64,000 nt of DNA. Origin: Euprymna scolopes. Taxonomy: Eukaryota. The position numbers and the translations under genes are program-made. The notes beneath the pieces are model-generated. The model was given only the letters and a program-made list of their open reading frames with translations, was not told the origin of the DNA and ran no database searches. Position 1 is the first letter of the stretch, and the number at the start of each line of letters is the position of its first letter. The DNA is taken from NCBI GenBank assembly GCA_053919585.1, contig CM132792.1. One strand, given 5' to 3'. This document shows, one piece after another, positions 61,198 to 61,639 of this stretch.

Positions 61198-61639
61198 TTT
61201 ATTGAGATTGTCGGACTGACTTCCTCGTCTTGGTTGTTATAGTCACAACGTTTCGGCCGTTTTGCCCTCCAGCCTTCATCAGGTGTTTTTTTATCGAACT
61301 GGGGAACCGTTTATTAGGAGTCTCGAACCCAACCCTTTATTATTATTACGGGGGTACCGTGTTCGGACTCCAGCTAGGCTCTGGGACATAGTTGCTGATT
61401 CTCTGTTTTTAATGTTACTTTTCACTGCCTTCGTTCAGGATTGAACTCAGCACCTTTGGGTAACTGTAAACTTTGATACAACGTCTAGGACCACTCGGCC
61501 ATATGTCACTAGGACGACTGATGAAGGCCGAAGGGCAAAACGGCCGAAACGTTGTGACTATAACAACCAAGATGAGGAAGTCAGTCCGACAACTTCAATA
61601 AATGAAAACACCTCATCTCAAAAATACAGACAATTACTA
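61198..61639 (-). mobile_element. tRNA-headed element with HHR-like tail, inverted upstream tail copy and 9-bp TSD
   Basis: Arms 61198-61282 and 61518-61602 are inverted. A box TGGCCGAGTGG (61491-61501, minus) and B box GAGTTCAATCC (61438-61448, minus). AACATTCTA at 61189-61197 and 61640-61648. Confidence 0.82.

Follow-up and report, generated by a model that had tools for sequence, protein, structure and literature searches.

Short interspersed elements (SINEs) are defined by borrowing the 3′ end of a long interspersed element (LINE). Penelope-like elements (PLEs) constitute the third class of eukaryotic retrotransposons, and both the mechanism of their mobilization and the role of their hammerhead ribozymes are still poorly understood. 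The subject of this work is a short non-coding element of Euprymna scolopes that bears marks of both SINEs and PLEs. It occupies positions 61189-61648, read on the minus strand, of a 64-kb stretch of contig CM132792.1 (assembly GCA_053919585.1), an AT-rich sequence (32% GC) hereafter called the window. The element contains no open reading frame (ORF) with a family match; it begins with a tRNA-like promoter for RNA polymerase III (Pol III), ends with a PLE-type 3′ module, and is preceded by an inverted partial copy of this module. That the locus is a PLE-type insertion is very probable; that the element is an independent, tRNA-headed SINE transcribed by Pol III and using a PLE partner is, in our judgment, somewhat probable.

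An adjacent inverted copy truncated at its 5′ end, together with a tail of 30-40 bp at one end only, is typical of PLE insertions and unique to them (PMC8557442, PMC11167929), and a high level of 5′ truncation is normal for these elements (PMC8557442). In vitro, a PLE protein was found to cleave and extend both target strands and to start reverse transcription at two adjacent internal sites, which are located in a stem-loop a short distance downstream of the hammerhead; the tail corresponds to the sequence that separates these sites (PMC11167929). The minimal hammerheads (min-HHRs) of metazoan PLEs lack loop III and have palindromic positions 15.2-16.2, so that two molecules form helix III jointly; moreover, their helix I is short, one base is inserted between positions 9 and 10.1, and the G10.1-C11.1 pair is conserved (PMC4209133). 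Finally, metazoan retrozymes have been proposed to be PLE-mobilized SINE-like elements, a proposal made without structural evidence and for repeats explicitly described as having no promoters (PMC7761336, PMC7229834).

Read on the minus strand from 61648 to 61189, the locus is composed of TAGAATGTT, a 36-nt extension, an inverted arm, 9 nt, the head, the body, a direct arm, and TAGAATGTT again. The arms are an 86-nt inverted repeat (61197-61282 and 61518-61603) with 94% complementarity (5/86 mismatches), whose copies are 235 nt apart. The direct 3′ arm (61197-61282, minus) carries the minimal hammerhead and ends with ...CAATAAA(T), while the inverted arm (61518-61603), a 5′-truncated copy of the 3′ module that begins exactly at CTGATGA, has its hammerhead sense on the plus strand, opposite to the element. 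The 36-nt extension, or tail (61604-61639, plus), is found on the inverted arm alone and does not follow the direct arm. Between the arms lie a 9-nt junction (61509-61517, minus), the tRNA-like head (61430-61508, minus), and a non-coding body of about 150 nt (61283-61429, minus) that has no BLAST relatives within the window. The junction is unlike the arm and unlike the sequence upstream of CUGAUGA in the direct arm; it represents either a Pol III leader or untemplated bases.

The whole is a single insertion inside one duplication. The 9-mer AACATTCTA (plus strand) is repeated exactly at 61189-61197 and 61640-61648; the duplication is given as 8-9 bp because one base is ambiguous with the arm end. 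As a control, direct repeats anchored at one arm end were sought within 70 nt past the other arm; of about 19,000 control positions in the same window, 1.0% had a repeat of 9 bp or more. This one duplication encloses the inverted arm, its tail, the head, the body, and the direct arm, and the two focal arms are 94% identical to each other and match the other five arms in the window weakly. The focal locus is best explained as a single retrotransposition event. The initial annotation, made from the letters alone, had pointed within 61198-61639 to a minus-strand A box, B box, body and hammerhead-like tail, to an inverted tail copy upstream of the head with an extension of ~35 nt, and to a bracketing 9-bp direct repeat; all of these are present in the sequence.

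Both arms start exactly at CTGATGA and read CUGAUGA-A-GGC(U/C)G..CGGCC-GAAACGUU-GUGAC, and they are the sole two CTGATGA..GAAAC matches in the window. In hammerhead numbering, the core is C3UGAUGA9, an extra A, G10.1GC(U/C)G, a 10-nt loop, CGGCC11.1, G12AA, A15.1C15.2G16.2U16.1, U17, and GUGAC. In the direct arm (minus strand), CUGAUGA lies at 61276-61282, the helix II strands at 61270-61274 and 61255-61259, and GAAACGUU at 61247-61254, with cleavage predicted after the U at 61247. Helix II is 5 bp long, and a palindromic ACGU replaces stem III, there being no loop III. Helix I, of 3 bp (CAC/GUG), is formed by the direct arm alone, since the inverted arm is truncated at C3. All four published criteria of the min-HHR (PMC4209133) apply to the arm motif, which, judged by its sequence, is the dimer-type minimal hammerhead of PLEs. 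The initial annotation had seen no obvious canonical stem III or cleavage (NUH) triplet here; this view has to be revised, as the triplet GUU is of the NUH type and the ACGU in place of stem III is precisely what the minimal form has. Across the seven arms, helix II is paired in 85% of cells, as compared with 16-60% in slid controls, and compensatory changes are seen at three of its five pairs (C-G to U-A, and twice G-C to A-U). This covariation points to selection on the RNA, modestly so with seven sequences. No compensatory changes were found for the hairpin GUUGU/ACAAC, which was rejected as a conserved structure. Probably, the hammerhead is a part of the recognized 3′ structure or cleaves in RNA dimers only.

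The one-sided tail is shared with another copy. It can be aligned with 40-odd nt beyond the arm at 2585-2629 (CCTCATCTCAAAA..CAGA.ACAA.TTA), a score reached by 0/2000 shuffles; for the arm at 14325-14376, the tail similarity is marginal (p 0.05-0.13), and the flanks of the four remaining arms in the window show no similarity to the tail. The tail belongs to the inverted arm in the case of the focal copy and to the direct one in that of the 2585-2629 copy. According to the predicted fold, the tail sequence CCUCAUCU (CCUCAUC) pairs with AGAUGAGG of the arm (GAUGAGG, 61570-61578) into an 8-bp stem (z -2.48), and the tail-less 3′ end ...AAUAAA falls within the enclosed loop. AGAUGAGG is the best-conserved block across all seven arms, and both halves of the stem are kept in the two or three tail-bearing copies, where compensatory changes are not available as a test. 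The focal locus thereby reproduces the geometry published for PLEs: 52 nt separate the predicted cut site from the first end, and 36 nt more lead to the second.

Searching the window with a profile of just the two focal arms yields five further sites (1622-1691, 14378-14451, 2650-2688, 57773-57822, and 14490-14563) with E values from 1.5e-4 to 0.026, and nothing else. In the reverse direction, profiles from the other arms recover the focal arms at 1e-5 to 1e-7. A BLAST search of the element against the window gave a single 32-nt match (2650-2681), so that profiles were needed to reveal the family. The arm-only relatives suggested earlier are accordingly real. All arms have a common 3′ end (...AAUAAA-like) and differ in 5′ truncation (~20, ~45, and >200 nt upstream of the hammerhead), which is the signature of target-primed reverse transcription and not of cut-and-paste transposition. 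Three of the seven arms are solo.

Copy 2 (2585-2910, minus), old and diverged, is the only other one to reach the head region. It includes a tail (2585-2629), an arm with a decayed hammerhead (2630-2712) that is recovered by leave-out profiles, a body, and the A-box 9-mer TGGCCGAGT (2893-2901); its 5′ end is undefined. Whereas 0.09 occurrences of this GC-rich 9-mer are expected in the window, there are three. The one in copy 2 has the right strand and precedes GAAAC by 222 nt, the distance in the focal copy being 247 nt, so that both copies reaching the head carry the 9-mer at a matching distance. A degenerate B-box-like GGTTGAATTTT follows 48 nt downstream of TGGCCGAGT in copy 2, and the two copies share the collinear blocks ACGGTAC, TTCGA.A, AAAC..TTCCC.AGTTC, and ACAC in between. 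Global alignment of head plus body from the two copies gives z 1.8-2.0, a value reached by 46/1000 shuffles and 13/1000 genomic controls. Upstream of the copy 2 head, an inverted arm amounts to a weak 19/37 match by eye with no profile match. The second copy had initially been drawn as extending over 2585-4885; the part at ~2585-2910 is indeed related, but the profiles find no arm at 4780-4900 that would close a 2.3-kb copy, and the interior is Tc1/mariner debris. The third occurrence of TGGCCGAGT (14097-14105, minus), 235 nt from an arms-only pair described below, has no B box or arm downstream and was rejected as a head.

At its tail-bearing 3′ end, copy 2 borders directly on a long (AT)n tract (2520-2585), and the focal copy is ~130 nt away from another one (61014-61075). 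Some PLEs are reported to prefer (TA)n, with which such locations agree, although two cases prove nothing.

The remaining relatives are truncated. Copy 3 (1575-1702, plus) is a solo copy made up of ~45 nt of body plus the arm, with no tail; its alignment with copy 2 runs from TTTGATAGAAAAATTCCC through the end of the arm, and upstream of this the homology stops. Short collinear blocks directly upstream of the hammerhead are common to the focal copy, copy 2, and copy 3. The arms-only inverted pair (14325-14577) consists of an inverted arm with a probable tail (14325-14462, sense on the minus strand) and a direct arm (14486-14577, sense on the plus strand) whose hammerhead has decayed, both truncated ~20 nt upstream of the hammerhead. 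Finally, a solo, truncated and decayed arm at 57772-57850 (minus) is matched by the profile and is shorter than copy 3.

The head owes its designation to its promoter boxes. The A box TGGCCGAGTGG is exact (61491-61501, minus), and the B box AGTTCAATCCT (61437-61447, minus), 42 nt from it, has two mismatches to GGTTCRANNCC. In a scan of both strands for an A box (up to one mismatch) that has a B box (up to two mismatches) 25-70 nt downstream, ~0.2 pairs are expected per window and two were found, namely the focal head and a tRNA-Cys-like gene; scaled from the window rate, the chance of such a pair in this 235-nt stretch and strand is ~4e-4. The A box starts 16 nt (9+7) from the 5′ junction with the inverted arm, which puts tRNA position 1 about 9 nt after the arm, that is, at the place where a Pol III transcript would begin. 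Within the body, GGTTCGAGACT (61319-61329, minus), 170 nt downstream of the A box and preceded by TAGCTGGAGTCC, is a better B-box match; this region may be a remnant of a second tRNA-like unit.

Taken together, the focal locus shows three marks of PLEs, i.e., an inverted truncated copy next to the unit, a 36-nt one-sided tail, and a min-HHR in the terminal repeat, along with two marks of SINEs, i.e., 5′ A and B boxes at tRNA spacing and a flanking target-site duplication (TSD) of 8-9 bp. The proposal of the initial annotation, a tRNA-derived SINE served by a PLE reverse transcriptase (RT)/GIY-YIG partner, holds as far as the PLE insertion marks are concerned, but the head is not recognized as a tRNA, and the SINE side is plausible on thin data.

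Several observations weigh against this proposal. As to the head, ARAGORN with default settings finds no tRNA there and calls it only at a 70% threshold, together with a spurious tRNA on the opposite strand; the Rfam tRNA model has no match at E<=10 on slices of 651 and 106 nt, and the cloverleaf is not preserved. The tRNA ancestry of the head is putative. The head is present on only one intact and one decayed copy, between which local alignment of head plus body is not significant and the homology is marginal (z ~2). As to the hammerhead, the Rfam models are unmatched at the locus at E<=10 (651-nt and 111-nt slices), and a whole-window Rfam run at the gathering score reports neither a hammerhead nor a tRNA at the locus; a hammerhead miss is to be expected, since the min-HHR has no stem III. 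Helix I comprises just 3 bp, and cleavage is predicted from sequence. Moreover, the focal direct arm carries no tail, so the focal copy itself may be dead. The window contains no PLE RT, and no copy of the focal element was found outside it in a related 21-kb contig, by pseudo-ORF queries, or in scans of JGI metagenomes.

The search for a PLE partner yielded a single candidate relic. A regular-expression search for YxDD, GIY, and YIG motifs on all 929 stop-free pieces of the window found no PLE coding remnants, and Pfam analysis of the nine longest ORFs of the window returned only LINE RT and mariner. PLE RT and endonuclease remnants had been reported initially; the RT of the window (21243-22990) turns out to be LINE-type (YANDT, RPxMEYC; Pfam RVT_1), and what is left is just a GIY-YIG-like relic at 28328-28885 (minus). 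Its stop-free pieces, ...CNCRHRTLCPVQNKCL..VVYQATI..KYYVG... and ...CRLCLHEKLAILYF..., give overall CxC...VVYQATI...YYVG...CRLCLHEK; for the second of them, a protein-atlas feature search returned mollusc “GIY-YIG domain-containing” clusters (score 0.91), and Pfam returned none. Located 33 kb from the focal copy and with no RT attached, it is likely the nuclease relic of a Penelope-type element.

Outside the window, a 21-kb ENA contig of a related genome (ERZ22157276), reached via the LINE RT, holds no arm. It shares LINE, Tc1-like, and U2-repeat families with the window at 75-94% identity, which indicates that the contig (ERZ22157276:ctg7733l) comes from a related species. Spurious ORFs of the element used as protein queries gave no word match and one weak irrelevant match, and two arm-pattern scans of JGI metagenome contigs gave 0 and then 9 chance matches without hammerhead context. 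Relatives of the window's mariner led to unrelated genomes sharing the mariner only.

Of the rival explanations, the one closest to the data is that the element is a 5′-truncated copy of a longer PLE, the 235 nt upstream of the hammerhead being its 3′ untranslated region or terminal repeat, rather than an independent SINE; the A and B boxes would then be due to chance or be a promoter built into the PLE repeat, with the insertion mechanism unchanged. All PLE hallmarks apply equally to this explanation, 5′ truncation is usual for PLEs and is seen in the other five arms of the window, and tRNA models do not recognize the head. Nevertheless, it requires a truncation that by chance fell no more than ~16 nt from where a tRNA-like unit starts. 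Copy 2 has no PLE coding remnant upstream of its A box, and the sequence is Tc1-like by 3286, in a part common to contig ERZ22157276:ctg7733l. The GC-rich A-box 9-mer has been kept in two strongly diverged copies, which fits promoter selection. On balance, we regard a truncated PLE as unlikely. A separate origin of the two halves, with a LINE-mobilized tRNA SINE inserted in or beside an existing Penelope-type pair, or a solo arm inserted beside a SINE, could be imagined given that PLEs tend to insert in or beside earlier copies and that head and arms differ in their conservation level among copies. However, the head is not bordered by a second TSD, a poly(A), or a LINE-type tail, and one duplication encloses the whole. 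The TTCCCCAGTTC...ACAC sequence just upstream of the hammerhead is shared by the focal copy with copies 2 and 3, implying that the body is continuous with the arm, and copy 2 has its A-box 9-mer at the matching distance. Two independent events are, in view of this, highly improbable.

The long near-perfect inverted termini and small size bring to mind a miniature inverted-repeat transposable element (MITE), that is, a non-autonomous DNA transposon with 86-nt terminal inverted repeats, a captured tRNA-like fragment, and an incidental hammerhead-like motif, the more so since the arms-only pair 14325-14577 is MITE-like and the window is rich in Tc1/mariner. Yet the sole significant direct repeat directly adjoins one arm and is separated from the other by 36 nt, while the bases beside the arm ends mismatch; the 36-nt extension is one-sided and conserved in another copy; of the seven arms, three are solo, and the copies differ in 5′ truncation but have a common 3′ end; and the core of the minimal hammerhead is complete in the arms, its helix II showing compensatory changes. 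A DNA transposon can hardly be credited on these grounds. The last explanation invokes spreading through a small circular RNA excised by hammerheads instead of Pol III run-off transcripts. It draws on the ~300-nt hammerhead-bearing repeats of metazoans that have been proposed to be PLE-mobilized retrozymes (PMC7229834, PMC7761336), but retrozymes lack a promoter and are arranged head to tail in tandem, with canonical type I hammerheads, whereas the focal unit, which is not repeated directly, combines a Pol III-type head with a single minimal hammerhead in sense orientation; a circular intermediate seems, accordingly, very unlikely.

If the element is a SINE with a PLE partner, the PLE machinery would act on a short non-coding RNA of ~320 nt, comprising a tRNA-like head, a body of ~150 nt, and a PLE-type 3′ module. 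The latter would consist of a minimal dimer-type hammerhead, ~50 nt, and an optional 36-nt tail folding back on GAUGAGG. From the layout described above we infer Pol III transcription, a PLE partner acting in trans, and double priming. Pol III would start a few bases upstream of the A box and transcribe through the 3′ module, which would be recognized by a PLE RT/GIY-YIG protein. The protein would then cut both target strands 8-9 bp apart and prime reverse transcription on both. Priming at the internal site (...AAUAAA) would copy the whole RNA to its 5′ end, and priming at the distal, tail-including site would stop after 122 nt, giving rise to the inverted arm. In its most general form, the proposal is that the genome hosts true Pol III-transcribed, tRNA-derived SINE families whose 3′ module is a PLE hammerhead plus tail and which parasitize the PLE RT/GIY-YIG protein, the GAUGAGG-tail stem enclosing the RT start sites being the recognition element and the min-HHR pairing two RNAs; this is quite possible, while falling somewhat short of probable.

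In comparison with known PLE insertions (PMC8557442, PMC11167929), the locus has the same abutting inverted truncated copy, one-sided tail, and hammerhead near the 3′ end of the repeat, as well as two alternative 3′ ends ~36 nt apart in a stem-loop and, in copy 2, a flanking (TA)n tract; it differs in that the focal unit of ~320 nt is devoid of an RT/GIY-YIG ORF and begins with a tRNA-like Pol III promoter. With the min-HHRs of metazoan PLEs (PMC4209133), the motif shares the CUGAUGA...GAAA core, the extra base, the G10.1-C11.1 pair, the palindromic 15.2-16.2 positions, and the short helix I, and for both, activity is expected as a dimer only; the 5-bp helix II, 10-nt loop, and 3-bp helix I of the focal motif, and its location in a putative non-autonomous element, are different. 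The non-autonomous PLEs described so far (Chlamys MRC1 and relatives, PMC8557442; Heliconius, PMC6685494) are likewise short, share the 3′ ends of autonomous PLEs, and have structures of the pseudo-long terminal repeat (pLTR) type, but a tRNA-derived Pol III head is not mentioned in those descriptions (PMC8557442, PMC6685494).

Among hammerhead-bearing repeats, the SINE-like retroposons Sm-alpha and Sj-alpha of Schistosoma, as summarized in a review (PMC6765202), are also short and non-coding and combine a Pol III promoter with a hammerhead. Sm-alpha, however, has a canonical active type I hammerhead and resides largely in tandem arrays, and no PLE-type tail or inverted arm is mentioned for it in this review, while the focal element has the PLE minimal hammerhead and the scars of PLE insertion. 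Non-LTR (long terminal repeat) retrozymes of metazoans (PMC7229834, PMC7761336) are similar in being ~300-nt non-coding hammerhead repeats for which PLEs were proposed as a mobilizer; they are tandem direct repeats with no promoter that produce circular RNAs, in contrast to the focal element, which is dispersed, single-unit, promoter-bearing, and furnished with inverted arms. As in classical tRNA SINEs, an A/B-box head is followed by a body and a 3′ module for an RT acting in trans, with a TSD and 5′-truncated copies, but in place of a LINE tail or poly(A) the focal element has a PLE-type 3′ module, and its insertion includes an inverted arm and a tail. MITEs resemble the element in being small and having long inverted termini; it is distinguished from them by asymmetric ends, a TSD not flush with both arms, solo variably truncated arms, and a ribozyme core. 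No tRNA-headed element with a PLE-type tail and insertion scars was found in the literature searched, which excluded Repbase Reports, most subscription journals, and the Repbase, Dfam, and SINEBase collections. The combination is new within this literature, which is not proof of novelty, and its separate parts (Pol III promoter plus hammerhead, min-HHR, PLE scars, short PLEs) were already known.

Other elements of the window deserve mention. At 47990-48200 there is a second, unrelated inverted pair, in which two arms of ~85 nt meet at the center; each reads CUGACGAG...CGAAAC and then a palindromic AUAU, i.e., another minimal hammerhead, and both end with ...AAAACGGTAATAA. The pair adjoins a run of N (47807-47953) and looks like another Penelope-type pair of inverted truncated copies. 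Two more matches to a relaxed hammerhead-core descriptor are located at 7047 (plus) and 29754 (plus), with the sequences CTGATGAGCTGTGAAACAGCGAAA and CTGAAGAGTCCCAGAGTGGATGAAACGCG. The LINE RT, with CR1/jockey-like motifs, is present in at least two copies (21131-22990 and 49970-51339, minus) and is 76-82% identical to a copy on ERZ22157276:ctg7733l (6950-8626), a contig that also shares the Tc1-like element and a U2-like repeat (46428-46584, 94%). The mariner at 5500-6800 (minus) has an intact N-terminal ORF of 225 aa; its DNA is 89-93% identical to copies on ENA contigs that share nothing else with the window, and the encoded protein shares 84% identity with one named in a mantis shrimp, Oratosquilla oratoria; these similarities suggest horizontal spread.

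With the full set of PLE insertion scars contained in 450 bp, the element represents a compact natural substrate for defining the RNA features that the PLE protein recognizes, the candidates being the hammerhead, the GAUGAGG-tail stem, and the two RT start sites. If the proposed mechanism is true, a min-HHR helping to bring two RNAs together could account for the deposition of two copies that are inverted relative to each other. The element could also serve to test the proposal that short hammerhead-bearing repeats of animals are mobilized by PLEs. Elements of this kind, given their inverted arms, are likely to be mistaken for MITEs in annotation, and they may account for a part of the large “unclassified SINE” fraction in cephalopod genomes (PMC13282606).

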